This document shows, one piece after another, positions 14,120 through 62,288 of a stretch of DNA of 64,000 nucleotides (position 1 is its first letter; each line of letters starts with the position of its first letter). Below the pieces are notes generated by a model, which was given only the letters and a program-made list of their open reading frames with translations, was not told the DNA's origin and did not search any database. This DNA is from Piromyces finnis finn. Its lineage: Eukaryota > Fungi > Neocallimastigomycota. Where the stretch lies: the NCBI GenBank assembly GCA_002104945.1, contig MCFH01000067.1, forward strand, positions 62,001 to 126,000. The letters run 5' to 3'. The translations under genes were made by a program, and so were the position numbers.

Positions 14120-14270
14120 AGGAGATATTGATAAGAAAGATCATAATGGATGTATATTTTTGCATAGAGCATGCAAAGGAGGAAACAAAGAAAATGTAAA
14201 AATATTTAGTTGAATATGGTGCTAAAATTGATATTAAAAATAGCAAAGGATGTATTCCATTAAATTTTAC
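14120..14270 (+). pseudogene. Ankyrin-repeat gene fragment upstream of LINE-2 copy B'
   Basis: DIDKKDHNGCIFLHRACKGGNKENVK, then (frameshift) YLVEYGAKIDIKNSKGCIPL-like sequence. Confidence 0.65.
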
Positions 14271-14289
14271 TAACAACAAACTAAAAATA

Positions 14290-23947: not shown

Positions 23948-24589
23948 GATAATAAATTCTAATTAAAAATATTGAATATAAAATAAATACTAATAAAAAT
24001 TATAAATATAACGTATATGGAAAAAAAATCTGTCTCTCTCTCTCTTCTTAAAAGTACTGGATAGTACAAAAATTGTTACGATGCTTTGTTTAGAGTTTCT
24101 TTTTTTGAATTCTAGTTGTAAATTTTCTTTAAAAATTCTAGTTTTGGTTTGTTGTTAGTAAATTCGAATCGCTTTTTGACACTAAACTTGTTTGACTTAC
24201 TTTTCATTAAATATTTAAATTGGTAAAAAATTTGAATCAAGAATGTCGACACCAGAAAGCTTGTGAATAGTATTTTTACATGATGTAGAGTGAATCAGTC
24301 TCTTACAAGAAACAATACAACAATAGCTACATGAATATAAAAATACAATGCAAATGCTAAAGTTGACTACATTGGATTCTTACAAGAGAAGAGTAGTACT
24401 ACATGAATACATGAATAAAAGAAAAAATACAGCAACAAAATGTATTACTCTTCTAATTAAATACTATACAAACTTACCTGAATATCAAACATTCAACTTA
24501 TTCATCAAATACTTAATTCGATGAATAAAATGTTTTTTAATCGCTCAGTACCATGAGCTTAGTCCTAATAATTTTCCCTTAAAGACTAA

Positions 24590-24835
24590 CCAAGCATCCA
24601 TTGCGCAATGCTTGGATTTAATTCTTTCTACTCTCTCAGTACCATGAGCATGAGTAGACTCCCTTGATAAACTACGTTTATTAAATAAATGAAGGCACGT
24701 TTCCAAGAGGGCACCAAGCATCCATTGCGCGATACTTGGATTTAATTCTTTCTACTCTCTCAGTACCATGAGCATGAGTAGACCCCCTTGAGAAACTACA
24801 TTTATTAAATAAATGAAGGCACGTTCCCAAGAGGG
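24590..24835 (-). promoter_or_regulatory. Two tandem 124-bp monomers forming the LINE 5' end (putative internal promoter or structured RNA)
   Basis: ccaagcatccattgcg...ccaagaggg starts at 24590 and at 24714. Each monomer contains hairpins. Confidence 0.7.
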
Positions 24836-39520: not shown

Positions 39521-40760
39521 TGTTATATTGAAAAATAATCCTTTTCTTTTTTACACTTGTAAAAATATGTAATTATTACCAATTAAACCTTTCAATTGAC
39601 TTTGTATTATAAAAAAAATATCACTATTCTTTTTTTTAATTAATTAATTAATTTTTTATTTAATTAATTTATTGGCTTTTTTTGTTTATATAAAAAAAGA
39701 AAAATTTAAATTTTTTTTAATTTAAATTCTTTTTGTATTTTTTTTATTTGTCCGTTTTTTTAGTATTATCTTCAATGTGATGTGACAAATACAAAAAAAA
39801 AAAAAAAAGAAAACATTATGTAGATGTATAAATAGTGTGTATAAATAGTGTGTATATTCATTTTATTAATTATTATTTTTATTATTTATATTTATATTTA
39901 ATTTATTATTATTATTATTCTCTATTTTTTGTTTGTTTGTTATTACTCCTACTCTATCTTTTATCACAAAAAAACGTCATTGCTAGAGATGAAATGAATT
40001 TTATATATTTATTGTGGAAATTGTTCATCTATACCATTTAAAAAAAAAAAGTTACTAATATTATTATAAAACACTTTTTATGCTGATACTAACAATACTG
40101 CCTTAAAAAGTTTAAAAAAATTGAATGAAAATTAAAAATAATATAATTTAAAATTTTAAAAAGTGGTAATTTTAAAAAATATTATTTTTTATTATTAAAA
40201 AAAGATTAGAATATTCTGATATTCTGAATGAAATTACTCATTTTTTTTTATAAATAAAATCATTCTTTTACATTTTAAATAATTGTTTTTATTATTCTAA
40301 TTATTTTTTTTTTATATTATTATTAAATATTATGTTTTATTTATATATATCTTTATTTTTTATATATATCTTTATAAAAAGATTAAAGATTTTACATGGT
40401 TAAACTCTGCTCAATTATAATATAATAATCTTTTTTATATTTAAAGTATAAAATTTAGTGTCTATGATAAGATTATAAGAATTAAAAGGATAAAAAAAAA
40501 AAAAAAAATTCATTTGTTTATTTAATAATAATAATAAAAATGTTAATAGTACTATAATAATACTATAAAATATTATAAAAAAAAAAAAAAATAAAGGATA
40601 TTAAAATTTAAAGTTAATATTTCAAAATTTGAATTATCAAAATTTAAAATTATTAGATCAAGTACAAAACGGAAGGATTCGTGTTCTTACCGATAAAGGT
40701 TATATTATATATACTATGAATTAAGTAGAAACAACTTAAGCTTTTATTACTTAGAGTGAT

Positions 40761-41331
40761 TTTTTTTTTTTTTTATTTTTTTTTTTTTTTTTTTTTAACT
40801 TCCGAGTGCATTTCTCCCATCGATCAGAGTTAGCTCCAATGGTGGTTCTTAGAGAAACGTTGGCTCATTCCTATTGCTAGGTGGTTGTGACCCTCCTGGT
40901 CTGTCATACTGTTTCTTCAGCTTCGACGCTCACTTAATCCATGTACATTAGATGCATGTCGTTGTACGATATTTCACAACTACAATGCTAAGCCTCTTAT
41001 AGTCAATTTGATCACGTGTCAACCGCCCCCTAATGTTTACACTTAAATTGATTAAGGAATATTATGTGTTTTTGGCATAGCCTAAGTCACCACTTATTAA
41101 GTTCTAATTTGGAATGTACCATGTACACTAGACCCTCTCAGGCCGGCTAGACGAGTGTTATTATCATAGTAGTAAATTAGAAAGTTCATTTATACTTACC
41201 TGAATATCATAACCCAACCCATGGCAAACCCAGTGGGAAAATCCACAGGCACTGACATCTGCGGGGTCGAACCAGAAGCCTTATGTATGCTAAGGAAACG
41301 CCTTAACAACCAGGATAAAAACTGGAACGAC
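40761..41331 (-). mobile_element. SINE-like element 1: tRNA-like head, LINE-1-derived segment, poly-A; 12-13-bp TSD whose right copy is split by the Gypsy element
   Basis: TSD acttagagtgat(t) at 40749-40760 versus 41332-41339 plus 49247-49251. B-box ggttcgacccc. 40891-40931 resembles LINE-1 19477-19517. Confidence 0.8.
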
Positions 41332-41339
41332 ACTTAGAG

Positions 41340-42049
41340 TGTTAAGGAACCAACAAATAATGTTATTCTTGTCATAATTAATGATTATGACCTAATCCAT
41401 TCATTATTGTTCCTAAATGTATGAAAACTTTACAATATTCTTATTTGTAAATTAATGTATACACTTAAATTATATTTAAAATTATTAATAATTATTTTTT
41501 ATTGAACTTAAATTTTATTTTATTAAACTTAAAAATTAATTTAGTAATAATAATATATTGAAAATTATAGTTTATTGAACTTTTAGTTTAATTTATCAAG
41601 TTAATGAATTTTTATTAATTAAAATTATGAATAATATTTCTGTAAAATAGTAAAATTTTTTAGTTAAATATATTTAAAGTAAACTTTTAATGTATGTTAA
41701 TCAATTTAATAATATGTATAAATATTTATTATAATAGTAATGTAATTTTATTATTCATTTTAAAGTAATTTAAATACTAAAATTATGTAAATAATTAAAG
41801 ACTAATTCTTTTAATTAACACTACTTAATTTTTTACAAAAAGTATAAAAAGGTGTATATTATAAGAATTAGAGAAAATACAGATATTTTTATTTTTATTT
41901 TTATTTTATTTTATAATTTTATATTAATATCTTAATAAAACAATTTTATTAATAAAACAATTTTTCTTATTTCATTTTAATATTATTTTTGAGTATTAAT
42001 AAATTTATTAATATTTTATAAATAAAAGTAAATTCCTCGAACCGTAACA
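41340..42049 (+). repeat. 5' LTR (710 bp)
   Basis: tgttaaggaacc...gaaccgtaaca; no differences from the 3' LTR were seen. Confidence 0.95.
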
Positions 42050-42056
42050 TAAAAAT

Positions 42057-42074
42057 TGGTGGAGATATCGGGGA
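42057..42074 (+). promoter_or_regulatory. Primer-binding site, tRNA-Ala-like
   Basis: tggtggagatatcgggga lies 7 nt after the LTR and is complementary to ...UCCCCGAUAUCUCCACCA. The isoacceptor assignment is from recalled tRNA 3' ends. Confidence 0.65.
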
Positions 42075-43584
42075 ATAATATTAATAAAAATTATTAATAC
42101 ATAGGATAAAGTAATATTAAAATATTACTAAAATATTATATAAATTTCTTAAAAATTTATTACCCTTCAAAGTTATAGGTAATATTTATATTACTGTTGA
42201 AGCTTTAAGGTATAATATTTTAGTAGAACTGAATTAGTACGCTTTAGAAGCAGTACTTATTTAGGAATTAGTGGTTAAGTTTTTAGGTCTAGTTTATCTT
42301 TCACAGTAGGATACTGGAAAGCGCTGAACCTTTCTATTTTGCTAGAGAAATAGAAGTGCCTCGCATAATTGCTACATGACACTGGTAATACGGTAAGCTG
42401 GGCAATTGTGAACTACTTAAGCACCCTAAATAAGTATTGGAAAATTGCTGTGAAATGCTGTTCTACTATACTTATTATTGTAATTCAAATTTTTAATAAA
42501 TTAAATATTATTTTAGTATTTATAATTTTTTAAAAAAAAAAAAAAATATTTTTTTTTAATTGAACGATTTTTAAAAATTATTCTTTTTAAAATATAAATA
42601 AATAATTCGAAAGTGACCCTTAGCGTGGCAAGTTAAACTGCTGTACGTAATACTTTGGTGTTCAATTATATCTGATAATTGGGGAAGATAATCAATTATT
42701 TTCTTTCCGCTAATTAAGTTAGTGATAATAAAGAAATTAATTACGTTACTTCCTTTTATTAAATTATATTTAATATTAACCATCGGGTATATTTGTGGCT
42801 TATCATCAAAGAGCTACGAGGGATTTTCACTTAGAATTACACAACCTATAATACTTGATGGTTTAACATTATATAGGTTGGCTTATATTTTTATAAAAAG
42901 AAATAAGTTTTTAAAAAAATAATTAATTAAAAAAAAAAAAAAAAAAAAATATAGATATATATATCTATTCTTTTTGTTGATTCTCTTCGAGTAATTTAAT
43001 ATTGCTAATTGAAATATTCTTTTCTTACTGTTTTAAGTTAAACAAGTTATATCAGCATAGACAAGCATTATTAACTAATCAACAGAGGTATACTAGGGGT
43101 GGTAGAAAGATCCTGAAGCACGTGACGGAACTTAGATCGTGTGAATAAGGTGACGGCAACATTTACCATTTGACGAAAGACTCTTAGTTAATAGTCTATT
43201 ATATATAATTTGGTCGGTAACTTGAATCAGTAATAACAATATTAAATTAAAATTCTTGCTAGTAAATTGAAAACAAATAATAATTAACTATAAGAAAAAC
43301 AGAAAACAAAAGTAATAATTTCATCTTTTCTGACTGAACTAAGATAGTAAGGAGTGATACTAAAAATTTAAATAAATAATTGGTAGTACGTGCTGTGCTA
43401 GATTATTTGTATCTCATTCTGTCAAGTGGTCGATAAAGGAATTTCGAGCTTGGTTACAACTAATAAGTGGTCGATAAAGGAATTTCGAACTTATAATTTT
43501 TTTTTTAGACTATCAAAGGTATTTTTGAGTCTATACTGTGTCATCTTGTACTGCAATAAATTCGGTCAAGGAAAATACAAGAAA

Positions 43585-44466
43585 ATGAGCAATTCTACTA
43601 CAAGGATAGATTTCAAGGAGTTGAAGAAGGAACTCAAGGATATAGAAAAACTTTCCAAAGATAATTTGGACATAAGATCCTGGGCTTCTGAAATAAGTTT
43701 ATGGATTGAACTTCAAGATATCACTAGTGCCAAGAAAATTTACATGGCATGTGTGCTTACTTCTAAGGGTGAACCAAGAAAGGTAATCCAAGAGTTGGAA
43801 GATAAAGACAGTGATAGTGAAGATGAATATGAAAGTGAAAATGAAGAAGAGAATCAGAAAAATGAATCTAATGAAGAAGATTATCCCTCACTTGGGAAAA
43901 TTATCAATGCCCTTGAAACATTTTATGGGTTAAAAGAAGATCAAAGTATGTTATTACGGGAACTAAGAAGACTACGTATAAGAAGAAATGAATCAGTTAA
44001 AGATTTCAATAGAAGATATAGATCTTTATATTTAAAGTTGGATAAGAAAAAGAAGAAGCAGATTAGTGTGTTAGATTATGCAGATTCTTTACAAAATAAT
44101 AAAGAAGCATGGAGAAAAGTATCTTTAAAAGATGATATCACTCTAGAAAAGGCCTTTAAGATAGCTGAGAAGGTAGATAGGTTATCTACTAGAATAGATA
44201 ATGATGGTAATCTACCAACGACTACTGCAATAACCAAAAGTTATAATAATTTTCAACCATACAAGAGAAAAGTTTCTTTTACTGAAGCCAAAAAGCCTAA
44301 TAAAGATGATGAAATGAATAACCTAGTCAAGAAAATGAAAAATTTAACTATTAAAGCTTGTTTCTTCTGTAGTGAACCTGGTCATTATCAACAAAATTGC
44401 CCAAAACTTCAAGCCATTATTGAAGGAAACAAGAAGCGTTATTATGATAATCATTTAAATCATTAA
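43585..44466 (+). CDS. gag: Gag with C-terminal CCHC zinc knuckle
   Basis: First ATG in ORF 43426-44466 (MSNSTTRIDF). CFFCSEPGHYQQNC knuckle. Confidence 0.85.
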   Translation: MSNSTTRIDFKELKKELKDIEKLSKDNLDIRSWASEISLWIELQDITSAKKIYMACVLTSKGEPRKVIQELEDKDSDSEDEYESENEEENQKNESNEEDYPSLGKIINALETFYGLKEDQSMLLRELRRLRIRRNESVKDFNRRYRSLYLKLDKKKKKQISVLDYADSLQNNKEAWRKVSLKDDITLEKAFKIAEKVDRLSTRIDNDGNLPTTTAITKSYNNFQPYKRKVSFTEAKKPNKDDEMNNLVKKMKNLTIKACFFCSEPGHYQQNCPKLQAIIEGNKKRYYDNHLNH

Positions 44467-47400
44467 GTGGGAGAAGAAGCACTCCCATCGTCAATAAAAT
44501 AGCTTCAGCTCAGTATCAGTCAATGCCAAGTGAAGAAACAACAAGCCAGAGTGATTGGTCGAAAGAAGAATATGATGAAGAAATCGAAAGTGACTTTGAA
44601 GATACTGATATTAATGAACAGTTCTTTGTATGTGCTAATAAAAGGAAGTTGGATAAAATAAGCAAAGAACAAGATGGTAATAAAGAAAAACGACTTCACA
44701 AAAACTTGAAAAATGATCCTAGACCTATTCTTACACCTGCTCTTAGGAAACGTAAAGCACAAGAATTAGAAAATATACCAATAGATGTTTCTCCTAAGCA
44801 ACTGCATCCTTCTATTATTGCTCAACCGAATATCAGAGAACAAAAACTAAAAGAAAGAAAACTTCGGGATAAAGAGCGTGCTAGTAGTAGTGAACAAAAG
44901 GAAGAAGAAAAGAATGAATTGGCAAGTTCTAATGAAGATCCTATTATTATCGACTATGATGAAGAAGAAATGTTGTCTGCAATTACAGATAAGAAAGGTG
45001 CTAAGGTGGTAGAGAAAGATAACACAAGTGAATCAACCAAATCTACTTCTAATTCAACTCTAAATAAATTAATGAAAGAGCAAAAGAAAGAAAAACCTGC
45101 AGAATCGAAGGTTAAGAAAACTGCTAGAAATATTCAAATGATAGCAGATACGGAAGAATATAATGTAGTTAAAGATCTTAACGAAACAAAATGCAATATT
45201 ACTTTTGGTCAATTACTTAACTCGGCTCCAAAGTTACGAACGCAAGTGTCACAAGGTCTTAAACTGGAAAAGAACAACACAAAAATTGTGGGAGCTCTGG
45301 AGAATTTTAATGCTACTTCGGTATTAGTAAATAATGTAGATCATTTGTATGTAAGCAAAAGTAAAGAAGTATCAGAAGAAGATATCGCTATGGTAGATGC
45401 AACGGTTGATGGGGTACCAGGTAAATTATTAGTTGATTCCTGTAGCAACTTAAGTATTATAACAAAAAAATATTTAGATAAACTTCCCCATCAATATGAA
45501 TCTATTGGATTGAGTTGTGGAAGAATACGTTTAGCTACTAAAAATGATGACTATTCGGAAGGTATAATTATTAGAGTACCGGTCCAGATAAATGATCTTA
45601 CAATCACTGCTGATTTTAGAGTGGTGGATAAAGAAGACCCCTTTTATGATATGTTAATTAATTTGAAAACCCAAATGGATAACAACTTATTTATCCACCC
45701 ACTTCGCTATAGTCTTTGCAGATTTAATTCAAATGGATTTATTGAAGATATTGCTCCAATTAATAACAAATATGATGATGAAGAAAAGATTATGTGTATG
45801 ATACGTAGAGTCGGTGATGAAGATTTTAAAAGTGATTTGAAAAATATTGAAGGTTTACCACCTTCAGAATATATTCACAATAAAAATTTTACTGAGACTC
45901 TTAATGAAAAGTATCGAGAACAAATTGTTCGGATATTGGAAGAGAATATTGAAATTATTGCTACTTCTTCTGAAGAACTAACACCTTCGAATTTAACTCC
46001 CCATAAGATTAATTTAAAGCCAGGAGCAAAGCCAATTAAACAAAGATCATATAGGTTAGCCAAGTTCAAATCTGATATACTTAAGGAAGAATTGTCTAAA
46101 TTGATTAATAAAAAGCTAATTGAGCCATCGTACTCGGAATGGTCTTCTCCGGTGGTTTTGGTCCCGAAGCATAATGGGAAATGGAGAATGTGCGTGGACT
46201 ATCGAAGAGTTAATGATTTGTCTGAAAAGGATGCCTATTCAATTCCTTTTATAGATGAGATATTTGATAGTTTACATGGTGCAACTATATTCACTACTAT
46301 GGACTTATATTCCGGCTATCATCAAATCCTTATGGATGAAGAAAGCGTTGAATTGACAAGTTTTACAACTAAGTTTGGAAATTACCAATTCAAGGTTATG
46401 CCTTTTGGTCTCACTGGAGCACCCGCTACATTTCAGAGGGAGATGAATCGGATTCTGTTTCCGTTAATTGGAAAGTGTGTTTATAACTTCATTGATGATA
46501 TTCTGATCTATTCAAAGAGTATTGAAGAACATATTGAACATATAAATCAAGTTTTAGCAATTTTCCGGGAAAACAAACTAAAAATCAATATTGAAAAATG
46601 TCATTTTATGCAAACTGAAGTTGACGTGTTAGGCCATCGTTTAACTACAGAAGGTCTTAAACCATTAGATAACAAAATCCAAGCTATAAAAAATTGGAAA
46701 CCTCCTTCGAATATCCATGAATTAAGATCATTCCTAGGTTCAATTGGATATTATAGAGATTTTATTCCTAATTATGCTAAACTTACTGCTCCCTTGTGTA
46801 AGCTGCTTAGAAAAGGTGTTCCTTTCAAATGGTGTAATGAACAACAAGAGAGTTTTATTATATTGAAAGAAAAGTTAATTAATGCGCCTATTCTGAAATT
46901 CCCTGATTTTGAGAAAGAATTTATAATCCGAACAGATGCATCGTATGAAGGAATCGGAGGAGTATTATTACAAAAGGAAGGCACAGATATTGAACATCCA
47001 ATTCATTATATTAGCCGAAGTCTGACGAAAGCAGAAAAAAATTATGGAATTACTGACTTGGAAGGGACTGCCTTATTTTACTGCATTACTAAATTAAAGC
47101 CTTATATAATGGGAAGTCCATTCAAGACTATCGTCTATACTGATCATAAACCATTAATTGGATTATTTAAAAATAAGGAGCCAAACAATGCAAGACAAAC
47201 AAGATGGTGTTTAACAGCTAGTATGCTAGGAGTTGATATTCGTTATGAACAAGGTAAAAAGAATGTTGTAGCAGATGCACTGTCTCGAATGAGAAATGAC
47301 AAAGATAAGGAAGTGTTAGCTACTAAAATTAATAAAGGTATAGAAGAAACCATGCTATCTAAGGTAATTAAAGAATTTGTTGAAGAAAAGTTCACCAAAA

Positions 47401-48509
47401 TAGATGGGGTGGATTACTTTATTGATGGAAGGAATTATCGAAAACTGATCACGGAAACCAATGAAAAGCTGAAATTGATTTTGGAAGCTCATAACATTGG
47501 ACATGAAGGATATTATAAAACTTATCAACGTCTGAGAAAAAGCTATTATTGGAACGACATGGTTAATGATATTCGAAGAGTTGTAGCCAAATGTGAAAAA
47601 TGCCAACTTAATCGCCCTCAACCATATCCAGAACCTACGGAAAATCTTCCAACTGAGGTTGAAGCTCCTTTCACTCATCTGGGTTTAGATATCATTGGTC
47701 CATTGGTAAAAACTCGTAACAATAACCAATATATTATAGTTGCAGTGGATCATTTCACAAAATGGGTCGAAGCAGAACCCACCGAAAATATCACTTCAAA
47801 GGATGTCATAAAATTTTTAATCAATGTTTTCTCTCGGCATGGAGTACCACAAGTCATTACAACCGATAACGGTGTCCAATTTACCTCAGATATGACCAAA
47901 GTTTTCCTGGACTTATATGATGTCTATGTCAAGTTTGTCTCAACTTATCATCCTGAAAGTAATGGTTTGACTGAAAATAGAAACAAAGAAATTGGAAAGC
48001 TTCTAAGACTGCTTGGAAAAGAAAACAAGGATTGGGATGAAATTTTGCCTTCTGCTCTTTGGGCGCTCAGAACTACTAAAAATACTGTCACAAACCATTC
48101 TAGTTTTGAATTGGTTTATGGAAGAGAAGATCAGCAACCCTTTGATATTGCCGCCAGACCTACTAAGGGTATTAATCAGTCTTCGGATGAAATCTTACTT
48201 GAGAAGTTTATTAATCATTACAGGTGGACGTTGGAAGCTTGTGAAAATATTAAAAATGCGAATAAATACTGGGCTACTAGAAGGGAAGAAAAACAAAGTA
48301 TGACTAAGGGCAAAAATATCCATATCGGTGATCTAGTATTAGTTAGAAATTTTAATCGAACGAAGTTAGAGCCTTATTTCGTTGGACCACTCAAAGTTGT
48401 CAAGAAACAATTCAATACTGTTACTTTAGCTGATATATCCACTGGAATTCAGATGAACCGAAATGTTCATCTTAAGAATATTGTAAAGTTTAACTCTGCT
48501 TTTGCGTAA
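44451..48509 (+). CDS. pol: Pol polyprotein (protease, RT, RNase H, integrase)
   Basis: LLVDSCSN (protease-like), WRMCVDYR, MPFGL, FIDDILIYS, TDASYEGIGGVL, HNIGH...CEKC, integrase core with DIIGP, TDNG, ENRNK. Confidence 0.95.
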   Translation, partial: SFKSLSGRRSTPIVNKIASAQYQSMPSEETTSQSDWSKEEYDEEIESDFEDTDINEQFFVCANKRKLDKISKEQDGNKEKRLHKNLKNDPRPILTPALRKRKAQELENIPIDVSPKQLHPSIIAQPNIREQKLKERKLRDKERASSSEQKEEEKNELASSNEDPIIIDYDEEEMLSAITDKKGAKVVEKDNTSESTKSTSNSTLNKLMKEQKKEKPAESKVKKTARNIQMIADTEEYNVVKDLNETKCNITFGQLLNSAPKLRTQVSQGLKLEKNNTKIVGALENFNATSVLVNNVDHLYVSKSKEVSEEDIAMVDATVDGVPGKLLVDSCSNLSIITKKYLDKLPHQYESIGLSCGRIRLATKNDDYSEGIIIRVPVQINDLTITADFRVVDKEDPFYDMLINLKTQMDNNLFIHPLRYSLCRFNSNGFIEDIAPINNKYDDEEKIMCMIRRVGDEDFKSDLKNIEGLPPSEYIHNKNFTETLNEKYREQIVRILEENIEIIATSSEELTPSNLTPHKINLKPGAKPIKQRSYRLAKFKSDILKEELSKLINKKLIEPSYSEWSSPVVLVPKHNGKWRMCVDYRRVNDLSEKDAYSIPFIDEIFDSLHGATIFTTMDLYSGYHQILMDEESVELTSFTTKFGNYQFKVMPFGLTGAPATFQREMNRILFPLIGKCVYNFIDDILIYSKSIEEHIEHINQVLAIFRENKLKINIEKCHFMQTEVDVLGHRLTTEGLKPLDNKIQAIKNWKPPSNIHELRSFLGSIGYYRDFIPNYAKLTAPLCKLLRKGVPFKWCNEQQESFIILKEKLINAPILKFPDFEKEFIIRTDASYEGIGGVLLQKEGTDIEHPIHYISRSLTKAEKNYGITDLEGTALFYCITKLKPYIMGSPFKTIVYTDHKPLIGLFKNKEPNNARQTRWCLTASMLGVDIRYEQGKKNVVADALSRMRNDKDKEVLATKINKGIEETMLSKVIKEFVEEKFTKIDGVDYFIDGRNYRKLITETNEKLKLILEAHNIGHEGYYKTYQRLRKSYYWNDMVNDIRRVVAKCEKCQLNRPQPYPEPTENLPTEVEAPFTHLGLDIIGPLVKTRNNNQYIIVAVDHFTKWVEAEPTENITSKDVIKFLINVFSRHGVPQVITTDNGVQFTSDMTKVFLDLYDVYVKFVSTYHPESNGLTENRNKEIGKLLRLLGKENKDWDEILPSALWALRTTKNTVTNHSSFELVYGREDQQPFDIAARPTKGINQSSDEILLEKFINHYRWTLEACENIKNANKYWATRREEKQSMTKGKNIHIGDLVLVRNFNRTKLEPYFVGPLKVVKKQFNTVTLADISTGIQMNRNVHLKNIVKFNSAFA
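44454..44506 (+). promoter_or_regulatory. -1 programmed ribosomal frameshift signal (slippery heptamer plus H-type pseudoknot)
   Basis: T TTA AAT in the gag frame at 44454-44460, a 6-nt spacer, stem gtgggag/ctcccat, and loop gaagc complementary to gcttc at 44502-44506. The pol frame is -1 and open from 44451. Confidence 0.75.
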
Positions 48510-48532
48510 GCAAGAGTCTTCGTGGGGGCACT

Positions 48533-49242
48533 TGTTAAGGAACCAACAAATAATGTTATTCTTGTCATAATTAATGATTATGACCTAATCCATTCATTAT
48601 TGTTCCTAAATGTATGAAAACTTTACAATATTCTTATTTGTAAATTAATGTATACACTTAAATTATATTTAAAATTATTAATAATTATTTTTTATTGAAC
48701 TTAAATTTTATTTTATTAAACTTAAAAATTAATTTAGTAATAATAATATATTGAAAATTATAGTTTATTGAACTTTTAGTTTAATTTATCAAGTTAATGA
48801 ATTTTTATTAATTAAAATTATGAATAATATTTCTGTAAAATAGTAAAATTTTTTAGTTAAATATATTTAAAGTAAACTTTTAATGTATGTTAATCAATTT
48901 AATAATATGTATAAATATTTATTATAATAGTAATGTAATTTTATTATTCATTTTAAAGTAATTTAAATACTAAAATTATGTAAATAATTAAAGACTAATT
49001 CTTTTAATTAACACTACTTAATTTTTTACAAAAAGTATAAAAAGGTGTATATTATAAGAATTAGAGAAAATACAGATATTTTTATTTTTATTTTTATTTT
49101 ATTTTATAATTTTATATTAATATCTTAATAAAACAATTTTATTAATAAAACAATTTTTCTTATTTCATTTTAATATTATTTTTGAGTATTAATAAATTTA
49201 TTAATATTTTATAAATAAAAGTAAATTCCTCGAACCGTAACA
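48533..49242 (+). repeat. 3' LTR (710 bp)
   Basis: Matches the 5' LTR. Confidence 0.95.
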
Positions 49243-49848
49243 AGAGTGATTAATATGTGAAGGTATCCTAATTCCATATAACTTTTCCCTACAACTAAAG
49301 ATTTATAATGCTTTATGGATGATAAAATAAAAATTAACACTATATTTGTTCAATAGACTTTTTTTTTTATTTATTTATTTATTTACTAGTTTTTTTTTAC
49401 AACTTTTTATTTACTTTATCAAAAATATTTTTATAGGATAATTATATATATTTTAATAATAATTTACTAAATTATGGATAATTATTATTTATATTCATTT
49501 AGTATTAATAAACATGAGTATATCATTGTATATTTATATTAGTTTAGATAATATTATTTAATCATCTTTCTATAGTGGATAAATTAATAAGTATATTGAA
49601 GATATAGATATAAAAATATATATAGATAGTAAAGCCAAAAGATGATTATTTTATATTTTATATTATATTTTAAAAATTAAAGATAACATAAAGTTCAAAA
49701 TTTTTTTTAATATTATTCTTATTGATTAGAGCTTTTAATATTATGTGTATCAATTTGTCAAATTTAATTTTTGTTGTAGAGTCGATATTTTTTTGAATTT
49801 ATACAAGACTTTTTATTTCAAAAAAAAAAAAAAAATATCTAAAGGTTT

Positions 49849-52470
49849 TTAACAACTAGATGGAATACCACACCAATTACCATCTTCGTAACCCCATTTA
49901 CCATCATTATCAATTTCGAAAACAGTACAAGACTTCTTACAACACTTGTAACCGAATTCTTCGGACCAGCATTCTTCTTCAACAATTTCATAGTATGGTG
50001 TAATACCACACCAGTCGTTTAACTTGAAGTCATAACCCCAGTCACCATAACTATCTGTGTAGTATACAGTCTTATTCTTTGAACTACAACATCTGTATCC
50101 AATGGTTTCAGCAATACATTTGTAATTTGGTTTAAGTGGAGTTGGTTCAACGACAACAGTAGTAGTAGTAGATTCAAGGGCAGGATTGGTTGGTTCAGTA
50201 GAAGTAGTAGTTGGTTCAACAGTAGTGGTGGTAGTAGATTCAACAACAGAAATAGAAGTTGGTTCAACAGTAGTGGTGGTAGTAGATTCAATAACAGAAG
50301 TAGTAGTTGGTTCGATAACAATGGTAGTGGTAGTGGTAGTAGTGATTGGTTCAACGGCTTCAGTAGTAGTAATTTCACCTTCAGAACCAGAAACAATCCA
50401 GTCAATGGCCTTTTCAAATTTGAAAGATTTAGTTTCACCCTTCTTAAGTGGAATCCAAACAGTTAATGGATCCTTACCAATTTGTTCAAGAGTAGCATCA
50501 GCTGGGAGAGAAGACTTCTTAACGTTAGTTGGAACAGTAATTGGAACAGTACAATCACCATTGGATGCAGAAACAGAAACACCAACAACTTGATCATTTT
50601 CAACTATTAACTTGGTTTCATGACCACAAGCTTCTAACTTGGCACGTTCAACATAAATATCAGCTTGTTTGCTAATCTTAATGGAGATTAATGGCCAATC
50701 AACGTATTTGGTGTAAAGGTTAACAACACTTCTAGTCCAATCTTCAAGAAGAGATTCACCATAATTTCCTTCCTTTTCGTAGTAACGAAGGTTAGCTTGG
50801 TGGAATTGGTGAGCTTCATGACGTAATTTAGTCATTAAAAGAAGGGTACGCTTACTTTCATGATCTAAAATTTCATCGTAACTAGAGTCTCTACCATAAT
50901 ATTCTCTGTATATTTCGTTAAATACCCAGGTATTTTCTTCCTTAGTAGAACAGTAATAGTAGACTTCAGTTGGAGTACGTGGAATAATTGGGAAACCTTC
51001 GAAATTACTACCTTCTAAAGTAGTGAAGAATGGAAGGTATGGGTTTTCTAAATTAGTAATAGCATTACGGGAAACATCACCAGTAGCGGAATGAATACCA
51101 TATTGTATGAAAACATCGAGAGCATCCTTGTTATGAAGACCAGAAATTTGTGGAGTAATAATAGAACTAGAAGACCAGTATTCGGTATCAAGAAGACCCA
51201 AGTATTTAGCCATTTCAATGTTTAAACGAATTTCATTGTCAACATCAGAAGCATCAAGTTGATCTAAATTTTCGTGAGTAAAGGTGTGAGAACTCCAGAA
51301 AAATTCTCTTTGAATGGTATCATTGTTTCTAAGGAAATTATAGACTGGATCTTTTTCAAAAGTAGCAATTTGTTTTGGAGTGAATTGATAGTTTTCAGAT
51401 GGCCAACGCTTATCACCAGTACCTGGTTCCTTTACCCATTCTTCATCATGATAACGATTTGGATCAATCTTCATGGATTGTTCGTAGTCACCAATAATTA
51501 AGACACCATTACCATTGAAAGCTAATTCACAGCGGTAGAAAGAACCTTCTGGCATAATATCTAAAACATCCTTTTGGAATTGAGCAATCTTTTCATATTC
51601 GAATGGAGAAGTACGAATAGTTTCACCACCATAAATAGTTCCCTTCTTTGGGTTAACTAATTCAGTAGCTAAAATAACATCATCAATATGTGGAGTGAAG
51701 TAAACACGACGGAAACCATTGAATAAAGAACGAGTACCCCATGTTAACCATAAATGATTAAGGATAATACTACTTTGATGCCATGAACCAAAACCAAAGA
51801 AGAAACTCATGACTTCACGACCATCTTCATATTTAGCAAGAGTAGCAGCAACAGCACCTTGTTTACCATCATCTTCATAGTATAAGAATGGTTTAGTAGT
51901 TTTAGTGTTAATAATCTTAACACGAGTATGGTAAATTTCATCAACATTTATTGGAGCGGTAATTTTAACTCTAGCATCATCGAAAATCTTTTGGACTTCT
52001 TCACTCTTTTCAACCATTAATGGTTGGTCACTTAAAGATTGGCCCCAATTATTTGGATTTTCTAAAGCAATATCAGTTCTGTAAGAAATATCATCAGAAA
52101 TAATAACTCTACGAATACTGTTTTTTGCTTCATATTCTTCAATAAAAGACCATTGATTAGCACTTAAGGCACTTATCCATCTGCCATCAACTTCGTAAAT
52201 AAGATTACCACCATTAACAACAATAAGATTGTATTTTGGATCGTTATTTTCATCATATAAATCTAAATTTCCAGTAAATGGTTCAGATGGTTTGAATTCG
52301 ATCATATCATATGGAATACCATAGGATTGGAAATTAAGTTTAATGGTGTCAGTTCCTAAACCCTCAGTAGTTAAAACTAAAGTTTTCATATTAATTGATT
52401 TCTTACAAGAAACCATGGTAACAGCAAAGACTGTAACAACAGTCTTAAAAATTTTTGATAAAAGAGCCAT
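49849..52470 (-). CDS. Secreted Agd3/CE18-like polysaccharide deacetylase with Thr-rich linker and two C-terminal fungal dockerins
   Basis: Signal peptide. RRVYFTPHIDD, SHTFTHENLD, ITPQISGLHN and FHQANL resemble recalled Aspergillus Agd3 motifs. Two GYxCC...WG...WCGI dockerins. Confidence 0.75.
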   Translation of the reverse strand: MALLSKIFKTVVTVFAVTMVSCKKSINMKTLVLTTEGLGTDTIKLNFQSYGIPYDMIEFKPSEPFTGNLDLYDENNDPKYNLIVVNGGNLIYEVDGRWISALSANQWSFIEEYEAKNSIRRVIISDDISYRTDIALENPNNWGQSLSDQPLMVEKSEEVQKIFDDARVKITAPINVDEIYHTRVKIINTKTTKPFLYYEDDGKQGAVAATLAKYEDGREVMSFFFGFGSWHQSSIILNHLWLTWGTRSLFNGFRRVYFTPHIDDVILATELVNPKKGTIYGGETIRTSPFEYEKIAQFQKDVLDIMPEGSFYRCELAFNGNGVLIIGDYEQSMKIDPNRYHDEEWVKEPGTGDKRWPSENYQFTPKQIATFEKDPVYNFLRNNDTIQREFFWSSHTFTHENLDQLDASDVDNEIRLNIEMAKYLGLLDTEYWSSSSIITPQISGLHNKDALDVFIQYGIHSATGDVSRNAITNLENPYLPFFTTLEGSNFEGFPIIPRTPTEVYYYCSTKEENTWVFNEIYREYYGRDSSYDEILDHESKRTLLLMTKLRHEAHQFHQANLRYYEKEGNYGESLLEDWTRSVVNLYTKYVDWPLISIKISKQADIYVERAKLEACGHETKLIVENDQVVGVSVSASNGDCTVPITVPTNVKKSSLPADATLEQIGKDPLTVWIPLKKGETKSFKFEKAIDWIVSGSEGEITTTEAVEPITTTTTTTIVIEPTTTSVIESTTTTTVEPTSISVVESTTTTTVEPTTTSTEPTNPALESTTTTVVVEPTPLKPNYKCIAETIGYRCCSSKNKTVYYTDSYGDWGYDFKLNDWCGITPYYEIVEEECWSEEFGYKCCKKSCTVFEIDNDGKWGYEDGNWCGIPSSC

Positions 52471-52873
52471 TTTGATATATAAATTCTATAGTTTGTATAT
52501 ATTTTATAATTTTATTATAATTTATAAATTTTATTCTAAATTTTATTGTAGTTTCAATCTTATTTATTTTTTTCTTTTTTATTTTTAGTTAATAGATACT
52601 TTTGATTATTTAAAATAAAAAATAAATAAGTCTATATATTGATACTTTGTATAGTAATATTATTGAAAAAAAAAAAATAATGATTTGTTTATAATAACAA
52701 ATTTAGTTTTATTTTTTCTCAATATTTTATATTTAATATTATTTAAATATTTAAATTATAATTTATATAATATTTAATAATATTTTTTCTCCTTCTTCTT
52801 TATCTAATTTTGTTCTTTCTTTTTTTTTTTTTATTTTAATTCCTCCAAATATTTTATAAAATATATATAGTAC

Positions 52874-52906
<33 letters not shown>

Positions 52907-53073
52907 TTTTTTTTTATTAAATATTTTTAGGCGTAAAAAAGAAAAGGCAAAAACTTTACTCTTTATATACTTTTTTTAAATAAAAACTCTTTATTAATAA
53001 AAATTTAAATGAAAAAGAAAAAAAGATATTGGTTAAAAAGTAATGTAAAAAAAAAAATATTTAAATGAATAAT

Positions 53074-53610
53074 TTTTTTTTTTTTTTTTTTTTTAGACTT
53101 CCATATATCCTCATCTAACCCCCTGAGTTATATATGGTATGTGATTGTACATTATTGTACATTGCCATATCAGAACGACGTCGGCACAATCATCCCTCTG
53201 GGCAGGGCTAATATGGAATGGCTTATTGCTCTTAACGATCCTATCACACAAAGACCGAGCTACCAACACCAGTGATCTCCTGAACCTTTATTGGCGAAGG
53301 ATGATTAACGATGAGAACAACCCTCAAAGACCATAGTTAGTAATCTGTGAATTAATTGATACCCCTTCCTACATATACTCTAAACTTCAGTGGGAAAACC
53401 GCTTGATACGGAGAAAACTACCAATCTGAATTAACTGCTTAGGGTAGAGTCCGGTGGTATAGTTATACTTACCTGAATTGACCTTTAACCCCTATACTTT
53501 AAGCGCAAACCTGAAACAGGAAAATCGCTAAAGAACTGTCAATGGCGGGGGTCGAACCAGAAGCCTTATGAATGCTAAGCGGGGGTCTCCAGGATAGAAA
53601 CTGGAACGAC
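53074..53610 (-). mobile_element. SINE-like element 2: same head as element 1, LINE-2-related motif, poly-A, 14-bp TSD
   Basis: TSD tttaaatgaataat at 53060-53073 and 53611-53624. Head gtcgttccag...cttagcattcataaggcttctggttcgacccc. Confidence 0.8.
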
Positions 53611-57461: not shown

Positions 57462-57571
<110 letters not shown>

Positions 57572-57572
57572 G

Positions 57573-58580
57573 AAATCTAGGTAATAATATTTTAAATGGA
57601 ACTATTCCATCAGAATTTGGAAAACTATCAAACTTACAAACATTGTAAATTGTTTTATATAATTTATTTAAAAATTCATATTTTTATATATAATATTAAT
57701 AAAAAACATATCTTTTTTAAAATAATGCATAACCTCTTTCTTCATTAATATAATATATAAAAGAAAACTCAAAAACAATACTTTAACTGGTCTAATTCCA
57801 TCTGATCTTGGAAAATTACCAAACTTAAAAGAATTGTAATCTTTTTTATATTTATCATAAAGATAGTAAAAATTGTAATACTTAATAATTTGAATTTATA
57901 TTTTATTTAATAATTTAAACTAACAGAGATATAAGTGAAAATGGGTTTAGTGGTTCTATACCAGACGAAATTAAGATGAATGATAATATAGATTTGTAAA
58001 TATCTTAAACTTTTCTTTTTTATTTATATGATTTTATAGTTTTACAATTATCATTGAATAAAGAAGTTTTATATTAAAAAAGTTTTATATATTTAATAAA
58101 ATTTATTTATATTGTAGTACATACAAAAATTATAATGATATTAATAAAGTTAAACCAGTAGTGAATGATACAAATTCAAACGAGGCTAATTTAAATTATA
58201 AACCATCATCATTTAATAAAATAATAGTAATTGAAATGATAATGATAATTACTATTATAATAGCCATATTTTTAGTCTTAACTTTACAGAAAAAGAAAAG
58301 AAGTAATGATAAAAATTTAACAAATTCATATTATTCACGAATTATCAATGATTCATCAGGACGTAACATAATAGTTAATACAAATGATAATAATGATGAC
58401 AATGACTCAATTATTATAAATACGATAACCAATGTTAGAACTAATTTTAATAGTTTATTGAATGATTCCGATAGTAATCCTAATATTACACTTGTTGCAA
58501 CGGACCAACCTCCAAAATATGAAGATATAATAGAAGAAAATATAGAAATAAATCAAAGTAGTATAAATGCAAATAGATGA
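57573..58580 (+). pseudogene. 5'-truncated LRR receptor-like paralog: exons 57573-57644 (72), 57764-57835 (72), 57927-57995 (69), 58118-58580 (TM plus PPKY tail)
   Basis: AG/GT-bounded phase-2 exons join in frame. TM IIVIEMIMIITIIIAIFLVLTL, PPKY at 58509-58520. No signal-peptide exon was found upstream of the AAT run. Confidence 0.75.
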
Positions 58581-59736
58581 ATTTTCGATAATTTAAAGGT
58601 GGAAATGGATGATGTATTGGAAGAAGTTGGGTTATATCAATTCCATATAAAATAAAAACCTCTTTTTAGAATTTATTTTAACTATCCATTATTGAATAAA
58701 GTAAAAATATATTAAATAAAGTTTATTTAAAATATAAATAAATGAAGCAATTAAAATTTAAATTTTAATAAATTAATAATTAAGTAAATTCGTGTAACAA
58801 GAGTTCCATTTTTAGTGTAAATCCTTAAATTAAAATCCAATAAAATTTCATATAAAACATCACAAATGAAAGTTACACAATATTCTAATATTATTAATGA
58901 TATTAATAAATTAATAAAGTTTTATAATTTTATATTAATTATTCTTTTTTTTTTTTTTTAAACAAAAAATGTAAAAATTAAAATGAATTCTATTCTCTAA
59001 TTATGTCAATAATGACTTTAATAATAATGATAGTAAAATAAGTTAATAAACTATACCTCTCTAACTAGTTTACATTGGCAATTTAATGAATGAAAATGAT
59101 ATTTCTATAGGTATATTCTCAGCATTCAATATTAATTTACATTACATTACATTTAAGCGAAATTATAGGAAAAAATTCATCTATAGTTCATCTATTAATA
59201 GTATTGTTTTATGTTTTATATTGTCATGGCATGGATCATTGAGGTAGTTAGGAGTATCTTTGTGAAGTTGGCTCAGTCAGCAGCGCGTAAGTCTCGTAAT
59301 TAAAATGTAAATAGAAATAAAAAAAATCTTTTATATAAAAATAAAATCATTACTTTTTACTCCCCTCCATAAAAAAATAATTATCCTTTACAATTAATTA
59401 TCCGTTTTTAATTCATAAATTATTATTTCTATTATTATTTTTAATTTCAAATGTAGCTTTTTAAATCAAAAAATTCGTGTAACATTTAATTTGTGTAACA
59501 ATAATGATTTTCTAATTAGCCAATAAAATTAAAGCAATATTTTATGAATTACATTTCTATTATTGTTTTTCCAAATTAATATTAAATAAGATTTGATTAT
59601 CATTATTATTATAGTTGACTTTTTTTTACCTTTTTTTTTTTGCCGTTTTTAAAAATAATAGTTCTTTTATTTTAATTTAATAATGCAAAATGTGAATGAA
59701 AAAAAAAAAAAAAAAAAAAGATAGATATAGGAAAAA

Positions 59737-62288
59737 ATGGTTAAATACGCTTTATTATTGTTAAGTTTAACCTCTACAATAAAAGTAATCTATTCAGCAT
59801 TTATTGAAGATTGCATTCCAATAAATAAATTATTAGGAGAACCTTCTGATTATGATTGTTGTTCCCATAAAGGAATTAATTGTATCAATAGTTTTATAAC
59901 AGAAATGTAATAAAAAGTTTTTTTTTTCAATCAGTGAAAAAAGAAAAAAAATATTAACATATTAACATAGATTAAAACAAACTTATTTAACAATTTTTTA
60001 TTATAAATAGAAAATTAGAAAATGAATATTTAAAATGTCCTATTCCTTCAGAAATTGGTAGTTTAAAAAACTTGGAAAAACTGTAATTTTTATTTCAATC
60101 TTCTTAATAAAGAACCTAAAATATATATTATATTTTTTAATTGATATTTACTTATTATTATTATTATTATTATAAATAGAGTTTTATCTCATAACTATTT
60201 ATATGATAATATTCCTTCAGAACTTGGGAATTTATCAAATTTAAAAATATTGTAATTGGTTATTTTTATTTTTATTATTATTATTTTTAAGTAATAATAA
60301 TTAAAAAATATATAAATTAATTTTTTTTTAATTGATAATTTTTATATTATAAAATAGAAATTTAAACTGTAATGATTTAATAGGTACTATCCCTTCTGAA
60401 CTTGGAAATTTAAAAAATTTGGAAGAAATGTAATTATTATTTTTTTTTCTTTATCTATATAAATAGTAGTAATATTGAATAATATAACAATAAATATTAA
60501 TATATAGTCATTATAAATAGCGATTTATCGATTAATCAATTAAGAAGTTCAATTCCTCGTGAAATTGGAAATTTACCAAACTTGAAAAAATTGTAAATAT
60601 TTTTTTTTCTTTTATAATAAGTAAAAAAAAAAAAAATAGATTTATAGAATTATTATTTTTTTTAATATTAATATATTTTATATTTTACATAGGATATTAT
60701 ATTCAAATGATATAATAAATATGATTCCTTCAGAACTTGGTAAATTAGAAAAATTGAATATGCTGTAACTATTTTTCTTTTCTTTTCTTTATAATAAATA
60801 GTAAATTTTCATATATAATAATTTATAATTTTTATTTCATATTATTATGTATTATAAATAGAGTAATCAATAATAATGCATTAAGTGGTTCTATTCCTCC
60901 AGAACTTGGCAATTTAAAAAACTTATATTATTTGTAAATAATATTTTTCAATATTATAAATTTTAATATTCTATTTATTATTACAATTTTATTTATTTTT
61001 TTTTTTTTTATTATTTTCTAATATAAATAGAAGTCTTAATAATAATATGTTATATGATGCTATTCCTCCTGAGCTTAGTAATTTGGAAAACCTGGAATAT
61101 ATGTAATTGCTGGTTTTTTTCTTATATGCATTAAAAGAAATTTATTAATTTTTATTTCAACCTCATATTTTTTAAAATTTTATTTATTCATGATTAATAT
61201 AATAAAATTCATTTAAAAAATAAAAGGTATTTCGGAAATAATACTTTAAATGGTTCTATTCCCCCTTCTTTTGGAAATTTATCAAAATTAAAAATTCTGT
61301 AATATAATTTATTTAATAATTATTATAAAAATAAAAAGTTATTATATTTATAAATAGGAATTAAAAGTTAACAATTACCCATTTTCTTATATAAATGTTA
61401 TTTTTAATAATCCTTATTAAAAAAAAAATAATAAAGAAATCTCCAAAATAATACTTTAAGTGGTCCTATTCCACCAGAACTTGGAAGATTATCAAACTTG
61501 AAGGAATTGTAAATTTATATTTTATAAAAATTATTAATTAAATAACAATAATAAAAATCTCATATAATTTTTTTTTTTTTTATAAATTTATAAAAAAAAA
61601 TAGAGATATTAGCGAAAATGGATTTAGTGGTTCTATTCCAGATGAAATATTTGAATTACAAACGTGTAAAATGTAAATACTATTTCTTTTAATTGTATTG
61701 TATTATAAATAATTCATAAATATATATTATTTTAATTAATTACATTTTTGTATAATAAAAAAATAAAAAATATAATATAGATATAGAAAAAATTTTAATA
61801 CCAAACCAATTTCAATCAAGGATATTCCTCAAAATAAGGATGTTTCAGATAATAAAAATAAAAATAATAAATCAATAATAACTACGGTAACCATGTCAGG
61901 AATGAGTATTGTTGCTTTATCAGCTTTATTTCTGGTTATAAAGAAAAATAAAAAAAATAATATAAAAAAAAAGAATAATTCTACAAACAATGTGAATAAT
62001 ATATATAATATAAATGATTGTTTTCCTTCCTCTACTGATTCTTCAAACGATATCAAAAGAATATCTAATCATTCTAATACTGTTTATAATGCTCATCTTG
62101 CACCAGTTGATGATACAATTAATAATAATAGAAATCATTCAAAATCTGTTAATTCAATTAATAATAGAAACAATAATTCACAAAATAATGAAACAAGAAA
62201 TAACAATATTTTCAATTATAACATTTCTATCAATGAAGAAGACTTACTTCCAAGTTATAAAGAAGTAGTAAATGAAAAAAATACATAA
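59737..62288 (+). CDS. LRR receptor-like membrane protein (464 aa): exon 59737-59906 (signal/Cys-cap); 72-nt LRR exons starting 60011, 60180, 60358, 60521, 60693, 60862, 61031, 61227, 61437; 69-nt exon 61604-61672; final exon 61781-62288 (TM, Asn-rich tail, LPSY)
   Basis: All introns are GT-AG and phase 2. The total is 1395 nt, in frame. Repeats read LxxNxLsGsIPxELGxLxxLxxL. Confidence 0.9.

Follow-up and report, generated by a model that had tools for sequence, protein, structure and literature searches.

A 64,000-nucleotide stretch of the genome of Piromyces finnis, an anaerobic gut fungus of the early-diverging lineage Neocallimastigomycota (contig MCFH01000067.1, positions 62,001 to 126,000 of the forward strand), carries two short interspersed nuclear elements (SINEs), SINE1 and SINE2, which begin with a common head. 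The whole stretch is referred to here as the window and its bases are numbered from the first. The two SINEs lie in the company of two long interspersed nuclear element (LINE) families, LINE-1 and LINE-2, and each contains in its body a segment resembling the end of the open reading frame (ORF) of one of these LINEs. The host genome amounts to 56.5 Mb in 232 contigs and has a G+C content of ~20%. The elements of the window on which the argument turns, with their target-site duplications (TSDs), are the following.

41331 to 40797, minus strand: SINE1, full-length non-coding copy of 535 nt; the same 535 nt are found at 30 of 30 fetched loci
40796 to 40761, minus strand: poly-A tail of SINE1, with one T interruption
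40751 to 40761: downstream copy of the SINE1 TSD, ACTTAGAGTGA on the plus strand, at least 11 nt
53610 to 53095, minus strand: SINE2, full-length copy of 516 nt, the head of which has lost 6 nt in this copy alone
53094 to 53073, minus strand: poly-A tail of SINE2
53623 to 53611 and 53072 to 53060: SINE2 TSD, ttattcatttaaa, 13 nt
24835 to 19202, minus strand: LINE-1, full-length L1-like non-LTR element (LTR, long terminal repeat) with an RVT_1 domain
23947 to 19439, minus strand: LINE-1 ORF, 1502 aa
19201 to 19181, minus strand: poly-A tail of LINE-1
24849 to 24836 and 19180 to 19167: LINE-1 TSD, atgtattatttaga, 14 nt
14316 to 15334, plus strand: LINE-2, 5'-truncated and internally deleted copy, poly-A at 15305 to 15334

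Both SINEs begin with GTCGTTCCAG, which is common to all sampled copies, confirming the original prediction that the two elements start at the same G. SINE1 ends in GGAAGTT and SINE2 in GGAAGTCT, each followed by poly-A. Each was also expected to have its own TSD and poly-A tail, as is the case, although the SINE1 duplication is of at least 11 nt and not 10. Its upstream copy starts at 41332, is split by the later insertion of an LTR element and resumes at 49243. Of the 31 distinct SINE1 copies 23 are flanked by TSDs of 11–15 nt and another five by shorter matches, and the poly-A tails of other SINE1 copies range from 7 to 60 A; judged by eye, the TSDs and tails of SINE2 are as in SINE1. The 30 SINE1 loci, which were fetched with the head, share 98.7–100% identity. 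SINE2 is represented by ~17 full-length copies at 97–100% identity, by an older subfamily at 85–88% and by fragments; the head is intact in ~25 copies, fragments apart. Genome-wide pattern counts, for which every control gave zero, returned 221 matches for the head core of both families, 213 for the SINE1 mid-body and 248 for the last 36 nt of SINE1. These figures for head, body and tail conform to the 5'-truncation gradient expected of target-primed reverse transcription, and both families recur across the genome, a point on which the prediction might have failed. Mean pairwise divergence is 0.4% for SINE1, 0.55% for SINE2 and 0.63% for LINE-2, in a sample of copies biased towards those resembling the query. 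The longest ORF in either SINE is no more than 37 aa. In being short, non-coding and dispersed, with a fixed 5' end, a TSD and an A-rich 3' end, and in having sequence in common with a resident autonomous LINE (both LINEs carry RVT_1), SINE1 and SINE2 show the expected features of SINEs.

The relationship between the two was assessed by global alignment of each segment, with z calculated against shuffles. It is strong over nt 1–80 of the head (z=17), falls to z=1.8 between nt 80 and a splice-donor motif, CAGGTAAGTAT, and rises to z=6.3 for the 14 nt around that motif. The bodies are unrelated (z=-1.1), and the last 40 nt are weakly similar (z=3.6). The predicted difference between the bodies is thus borne out, whilst the common head, put at ~150 nt, contracts to ~80 nt plus the 14-nt donor block, nt 80–125 being only weakly alike. 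A common head and donor joined to unlike bodies indicates that SINE1 and SINE2 are modular. Over the first 69 nt the identity of typical SINE2 copies to SINE1 is 88%, against 80% over ~80 nt for the head of the window copy of SINE2, where it is lowered by the private deletion. The missing bases, TTGTTA (nt 22–28, region 53583–53589), are present in other SINE2 copies, and their loss removes part of an A-box-like motif and of a 7-bp hairpin, TGTTAAG/CTTAGCA. One SINE1 copy elsewhere (L061:1830-2165; C150:542330-542665, minus strand) carries a tandem triplication of head unit nt 1–110; all three units begin at nt 1 and end in ...GGTTTGCCA. A switch of template at the 5' end of the RNA is the probable cause, and the beginning of every unit at nt 1 fits G1 as the first base of that RNA.

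The LINEs themselves are related to one another and are L1-like. Among solved structures the LINE-1 protein is closest to human L1 ORF2p. Its 3' region is represented in the genome by at least 1051 candidate copies, and all 40 of those scored are ~100% identical. Members of the LINE-2 main family (L065-L081) are ~99% alike, retain RVT_1 and are 47% identical to the LINE-1 protein over 347 aa. The resemblance of SINE1 to the end of the LINE-1 ORF, one of the observations on which the original prediction was founded, extends over 53 nt at 85% identity (SINE1 40931–40882, nt 401–450, against LINE-1 19517–19465), with a score of 66 against a shuffle maximum of 34. The corresponding match of SINE2 (53185–53162) to LINE-2 (14924–14947) also stands: 21 of 24 positions agree, and the score of 33 exceeds the shuffle maximum of 31, being reached in 0 of 300 shuffles. 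Agreement with the LINE-2 main family is 22/24, and for the older SINE2 subfamily it is 23/24. Cross-matches between SINE1 and LINE-2 or between SINE2 and LINE-1 were looked for and none was found. These segments belong to a module which occurs in the window at five places.

19475 to 19517, minus strand: LINE-1 module, within the last 26 codons of the ORF
40882 to 40931, minus strand: SINE1 copy of the LINE-1 module
14920 to 14967, plus strand: LINE-2 module, with hairpin 1 GCCG..TGGC and hairpin 2 GGAGCATT-CTC-AGTGTTCC
~9345 to 9391, minus strand: second copy of the LINE-2 module
53146 to 53185, minus strand: SINE2 copy of the LINE-2 module, with hairpin 1 GCCGA..TGGC and hairpin 2 TGTACA-ATAA-TGTACA

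The C-terminal regions of the two LINE proteins are homologous (E=1e-8), with ...KSVNAEETVRQARR lying opposite ...KSADVVPIWQR, which places both modules at the same site in the ORF; the DNA of both starts with GAGCG. Two adjacent hairpins, the second directly after the anchor, are present in seven of seven versions of the module (LINE-1, SINE1, the LINE-2 main family, the LINE-2 window copy, SINE2, old SINE2 and a metagenome element). The stems of hairpin 2 are GGCC/GGCC, GACC/GGTC, GGAACATT/AATGTTCC, GGAGCATT/AGTGTTCC, TGTACA/TGTACA, GTACA/TGTGC and GGAC/GTCC, so that LINE and SINE have in common a stem-loop whose stems covary. Tested against shuffles of local sequence, single modules give p values of 0.0008–0.09, and Fisher combination over four sequence-distinct lineages gives p = 2.8e-5. 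RNAalifold found one compensatory pair in the LINE-1/SINE1 set.

It might be supposed that no exchange has occurred, and that an ancestral SINE with an ancestral LINE module gave rise to SINE1 and SINE2 as they diverged alongside LINE-1 and LINE-2. The common head and donor, the weak similarity of the last 40 nt and the placing of the modules at homologous LINE sites would all suit such a history. The heads are 88% identical, however, while the bodies cannot be aligned, and each module is 85–96% identical to its own present-day LINE although the two LINE modules can barely be aligned with each other. The modules must on this evidence be younger than the split between the LINEs and have been re-acquired or exchanged, and common descent without switching is accordingly very unlikely. 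The proposal of a modular family that switches LINE partners is supported in part: a common head, unlike bodies, a segment of a different LINE in each, homologous ORF-end sites in the two LINEs, stems that covary and a segment kept in another species are what a switch of partners through module exchange would predict.

A relative of SINE2 in another species bears on the role of the module. Metagenome contig L094 (Ga0138317_1043819) contains a SINE2-like element; the other 28 of the 29 matches in the metagenome scan were chance occurrences in bacterial coding DNA. The neighbouring Snf7 ORF on this contig has no introns and, matched exon by exon, is 86–94% identical to three exons of the P. finnis genome, which indicates a related species and probably a cDNA contig. 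Identity between the element and SINE2 is 75–96% in the head, 88% in the donor block, 62–71% in the module and ~40% elsewhere. The LINE-2-type module is therefore one of three conserved islands.

These comparisons are also pertinent to a looser form of mobilisation, in which any active L1-like LINE would copy both SINEs by way of their poly-A tails, the LINE-like segments being relics of the birth of each SINE with no present role. The L1-like reverse transcriptase (RT), the long poly-A tails, the equal TSD lengths of both SINEs and LINE-1, the shortness of the modules and the restriction of the terminal 36 nt to the SINE would be natural under such a scheme. It is less easily squared with the survival of the module as a conserved island between species, with stems whose sequences change while their pairing is kept, with the independent presence of the same homologous LINE site in both SINEs, or with the closer approach to LINE-2 of the older SINE2 subfamily. 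Mobilisation through poly-A alone is for these reasons considered unlikely.

The preferred interpretation, to which we assign a probability of roughly 0.7, is that two families of non-coding retroposons, recently active, dependent on LINEs and built from modules, are represented by SINE1 and SINE2. The module is probably a handle giving each SINE access to the enzyme of its own LINE. Several observations weigh against this interpretation. Both LINEs are of the L1-like type with poly-A tails, often thought to need the tail alone. The module is internal rather than a classical 3' tail, lying 85–135 nt from the SINE poly-A; it starts 135 nt (SINE1) and ~90 nt (SINE2) before the SINE poly-A and ~315 nt (LINE-1) and ~385 nt (LINE-2) before that of the LINEs. 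The single hairpins of 4–6 bp are individually weak (z -0.2 to -2.1), and the sequence match between SINE2 and LINE-2 is short. The last 36 nt of SINE1 occur in no abundant LINE, their 248 matches being close to the SINE1 copy number as against at least 1051 candidates for LINE-1, and neither SINE has the near-identical 3'-terminal tens of nucleotides that mark a stringent LINE/SINE pair. TSD length, target and age offer no feature that separates SINE1 from SINE2. At the very end, the prediction that the SINEs terminate in gtt and agtct like LINE-1 and LINE-2 holds across copies (GCCGTT-An in three LINE-1 copies and GGAAGTT-An in 33 of SINE1; CCTAGTCT-An in 22 LINE-2 copies and GGAAGTCT-An in 26 of SINE2). 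Terminal sharing is limited to GTT and AGTCT respectively, however, and since only one C distinguishes the end of SINE1 from that of SINE2, it counts for little as evidence.

The head and the donor motif supply the remaining common parts of the two SINEs.

41222 to 41331, minus strand: SINE1 head unit, nt 1–110, the first ~80 nt in common with SINE2
41307 to 41317, minus strand: SINE1 A-box-like motif TATCCTGGTTG, nt 15–25, agreeing with 6 of 9 specified consensus positions
41263 to 41273, minus strand: SINE1 B box GGTTCGACCCC, nt 59–69, agreeing with the consensus GGTTCGANNCC at 11 of 11 positions
53548 to 53558, minus strand: SINE2 B box GGTTCGACCCC
41192 to 41202, minus strand: SINE1 donor motif CAGGTAAGTAT, a perfect 5' splice donor complementary to U1
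53465 to 53475, minus strand: SINE2 donor motif CAGGTAAGTAT
24472 to 24480, minus strand: donor motif in the LINE-1 5' leader
41340 to 49242, plus strand: Ty3/gypsy-type LTR retrotransposon with RT, RNase H and integrase

The A-box-like TATCCTGGTTG is invariant in SINE1, in typical SINE2 copies and in the metagenome relative. The LTR element also bears on the head. Its 710-bp LTRs are identical, it has its own TSD, AGAG, and a primer-binding-site-like TGGTGGAGATATCGGGG after the 5' LTR at ~42055, and it is very young. The window copy lies 8 nt upstream of nt 1 of SINE1, and since the flank past its 3' LTR (AGAGTGATT...) continues the SINE1 TSD, it must have entered after SINE1. The same element lies upstream of four other SINE1 copies in the same orientation, at 7–11 nt from nt 1 across the five. 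A search for an LTR end followed after 45–75 nt by a B box gave 30 matches in the genome (control 0), of which 25 are tRNA genes (Arg-TCT, Ala-TGC, Cys-GCA, Gly-TCC, Ser and Leu among them) and five are SINE1 heads, all in one orientation; at the tRNA genes 12–17 nt separate the LTR end from the 5' end of the mature tRNA. LTR starts number 183 in the genome as a whole, and only ~0.007 LTR ends would be expected by chance within the ~10 bp before a SINE head, as we estimate from 183 x 221 x 10 bp / 56 Mb. Several LTR starts are ~700–860 nt apart, which suggests repeated insertion at the same sites.

The element thus inserts in a narrow interval upstream of genes that RNA polymerase III (Pol III) transcribes, as do Ty3 and other Pol III-targeting LTR retrotransposons (PMC6673722, PMC5911963, PMC4600332). 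It differs from Ty3 and its kin in its fixed orientation at 12–17 nt from the mature tRNA 5' end, and it is found upstream of SINE heads as well as beside tRNA genes. Ty3 and similar elements locate Pol III genes via the transcription machinery (PMC6673722, PMC5911963), so that the SINE1 copies with insertions appear to be occupied in the manner of tRNA genes. The pattern is the best available argument for the head as a Pol III promoter, albeit one that is indirect and comes from SINE1 only.

The original description of the head as tRNA-like survives in part. The B box, the partial A box and, at canonical spacing back from TTCGA, an anticodon-loop-like TTAGCAT (U33, A37, anticodon AGC) with a 5-nt variable loop are all present, and by eye, without alignment, ~20 of 27 positions from anticodon loop to T loop agree with a partial tRNA-Ala(TGC). 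A tRNA fold is another matter, and here a number of results tell against a tRNA-derived Pol III head. ARAGORN identified 0 tRNAs in the window and in all the SINE loci, and nothing at the heads among the 81 loci run, and Rfam gave no tRNA or other small RNA on the heads, at the gathering threshold or at E<=10 on 211-nt and 80-nt heads. The stems flanking TTAGCAT do not pair, and no cloverleaf forms. The hairpins read as D-arm-like and anticodon-like find no support as a tRNA fold. The head neither aligns to a tRNA nor folds as one, and two patterns for a tRNA-Ala(AGC) of the same genome with the geometry of the head returned only a decayed SINE2 copy, or nothing. T5 runs occur in the head, one of them at nt 11–15, and no depletion of T runs, a signature of Pol III, is seen in SINE1 or SINE2. 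LTR insertions were found at SINE1 heads and at none of SINE2. Taken as a whole, the head seems to be treated by the cell like a tRNA gene, and its motifs probably constitute an internal Pol III promoter yielding RNA from G1.

Some further features of the head may be recorded. Between the first ten bases of the metagenome element and its B-box region pairing is perfect (GTCGGACCAG / CTGGTTCGAC); in SINE1 and SINE2 it is interrupted by two T-T mismatches, and a helix between the 5' end and the B box is possible in SINE heads. The same contig has a complete 5S rRNA gene (L094:1176-1294, minus strand; Rfam 106.9 bits), the end of which lies 16 nt upstream of the head of the SINE, and the Snf7 ORF abuts the truncated 3' end of the SINE. 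Either a chimeric assembly of cDNAs or a unit of Pol III read-through may be represented by this contig. Older family members are suggested by a third SINE1-like head (L056:850-1020, plus strand), which is strongly diverged, with the CTTAG..TAAGGCTTCTGGTTCGACC core kept and the donor decayed to CAGGTATGA. Within an intron of the LINE-1 leader (window 24245–24270, minus strand), ATTCACAAGCTTTCTGGTGTCGAC resembles the head core ATTCATAAGGCTTCTGGTTCGAC at 20 of 24 positions, a marginal likeness equalled in 12 of 300 shuffles.

The donor motif lies at the junction of head and body in both SINEs, is retained in the SINE of the other species and recurs in the LINE-1 leader. Its core, CAGGTAAGT, is found three times in the 64-kb window (LINE-1 leader, SINE1 and SINE2) against 0.18 expected, and extended by the AT next to it, it is complementary throughout to the conserved 5' terminus of U1 small nuclear RNA. 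SINE1 and the LINE-1 leader agree at every base of the 16-mer TGATATTCAGGTAAGT, and no likeness between the SINE1 body and this leader extends beyond the ~20-nt donor block. About 25 of the 33 genome matches to VATTCAGGTAAGT are SINE2 copies, leaving no excess that would reveal a LINE-2 leader with the SINE2 donor context. No genomic copy of SINE1 or SINE2 was found with a base other than G after CAG, which indicates that the RNA that was copied was unspliced. Among five variants of the LINE-1 leader, three differ by a point mutation in the donor, and a search of the genome for the LINE-1 leader joined to two guessed acceptors found none. An introner-like or otherwise spliced retroelement was considered and rejected, no copy lacking the sequence past the donor. 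A processed pseudogene was likewise rejected in view of ~250 near-identical non-coding copies with a fixed 5' end and no spliced copies.

More generally, the SINEs could be retro-copies of an unspliced RNA polymerase II (Pol II) transcript whose first exon ended at the donor, either as processed pseudogenes or as derivatives of a LINE leader. The perfect donor at nt 130–140 with its 16-mer in common with the Pol II leader of LINE-1, the T5 run at nt 11–15 and the lack of a tRNA fold are what such an origin might leave behind. Yet it does not account for so many near-identical non-coding copies with one 5' end, for the B box, or for the five SINE1 heads that have the tRNA-targeting LTR element upstream of them in one orientation and at the same distance; spliced copies number 0 for SINE1 and 0 for SINE2, and the likeness to the LINE-1 leader ends after ~20 nt. 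A Pol II origin is on these grounds hardly credible. Assuming Pol III transcription of the SINEs, the presence of the donor invites a different thought. U1 sites hold non-coding RNAs in the nucleus or on chromatin (bioRxiv 10.1101/310433; PMC9074902). The donor could conceivably be a working module and not a relic, with U1 small nuclear ribonucleoprotein acting without splicing, for example in nuclear or chromatin retention or in guarding against premature 3' processing in an 80% A+T genome. This suggestion is tentative, and we regard it as doubtful. Were it true, the donor and the two-hairpin handle from the ORF end would make up a minimal RNA kit for riding an L1-like LINE.

In outline, the elements are assembled from five modules. 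A common head of ~80–110 nt, with its B box and A-box-like motif, would serve as internal Pol III promoter and set the RNA start at G1. It is followed by the perfectly U1-complementary donor at ~nt 130–150, for which a function of its own may be proposed, and then by a family-specific body. Within the body lies the ~45-nt two-hairpin RNA taken from homologous last codons, of LINE-1 type in SINE1 and of LINE-2 type in SINE2, and a short 3' end with poly-A completes the element. Target-primed reverse transcription by the LINE endonuclease and RT would then place copies of the SINE RNA in AT-rich targets, giving rise to duplications of 11–15 bp and to some 5' truncation. The two families may themselves have arisen through exchange of modules by template switching.

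Parallels may be drawn with several known systems. The joining of heads or cores to parts of different LINEs, and the exchange of tails, are established for the bivalve HCD SINEs (PMC11481361) and for the CORE, V and Ceph SINEs (PMC5786205). Like these mosaic tRNA-type SINEs, SINE1 and SINE2 are non-coding, of high copy number and built from a head of probable Pol III type, a body and a LINE-derived segment, and the same head or core is combined with parts from different LINE lineages. They differ in that the LINE part is an internal ~45-nt module from the ORF end followed by 60–90 nt unrelated to the LINE, in that the partners are two L1-like LINEs with poly-A and the head has no recognisable parent tRNA, and in that the host is an early-diverging fungus. 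In the eel, UnaL2 and UnaSINE1 form a stringent LINE/SINE pair recognised via a 3' stem-loop, which is situated in the 3' untranslated region beside a short terminal repeat. There, as in P. finnis, a small stem-loop common to LINE and SINE is the likely handle for the RT, and pairing is kept over sequence; the stem-loop of P. finnis, by contrast, lies in LINE coding sequence at 265–360 nt from the poly-A of the LINE, and the elements end in long poly-A. With Alu/L1 and B1/L1 the present elements have in common SINEs with poly-A, an L1-type enzyme and TSDs of 11–15 bp, but whereas Alu has no sequence in common with L1, each SINE here has a LINE-specific structured segment. The Entamoeba EhLINE/EhSINE system, at least as outlined in PMC3118788, likewise pairs several LINE families with matching SINE families in an AT-rich microbial eukaryote. 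The present elements stand apart from the known systems in having an internal module from the ORF end as the shared part and L1-like LINEs with poly-A as partners, and also in the donor motif and in the lineage of the host. No SINE described from early-diverging anaerobic fungi was found in the literature searched on SINEs.

Little is understood of how L1-type RTs select their RNA, and a poly-A tail is commonly held to be all that L1-like LINEs require. P. finnis offers a natural two-by-two set, consisting of two related active LINEs and two SINEs with one head and a LINE-specific module each, in which the ~45-nt module is a candidate recognition element that can be swapped. SINEs and an LTR element targeting tRNA genes are hereby documented in an early-diverging fungal lineage whose mobile elements have barely been described, and the places where a Pol III-targeting element has inserted can act as natural reporters of the occupancy of Pol III promoters on SINEs.

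Of the minor observations, two concern the LINEs. The LINE-1 5' leader starts with two tandem monomers of ~125 nt (window 24590–24835, minus strand; ccctcttggg/aaacgtgccttc...), reminiscent of monomeric LINE promoters. In the main copies of LINE-2 (L065-L081) the RT frame stops at L066:1189-1191 and a CCHC-type C-terminal part continues in another frame; this break, common to copies that are ~99% alike, could mean that the frame shifts, that a small intron is present or that the family is copied in trans. The window also contains two inverted duplications, one of 2.1 kb (1–2108 against 11270–13377) and one of 1.1 kb (9056–10127 against 14188–15259), each 100% identical. They include the truncated LINE-2 copy, of which a third copy lies directly upstream of the window (L063), and they represent either a recent segmental duplication or an assembly artefact. 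Genes of the window include those for dockerin (CBM_10)-bearing CotH and Agd3 proteins, as suits an anaerobic gut fungus. Leucine-rich-repeat exon arrays with a period of ~170 nt occupy 31995–33410 and 57500–61515, apparently with one short intron per repeat unit.

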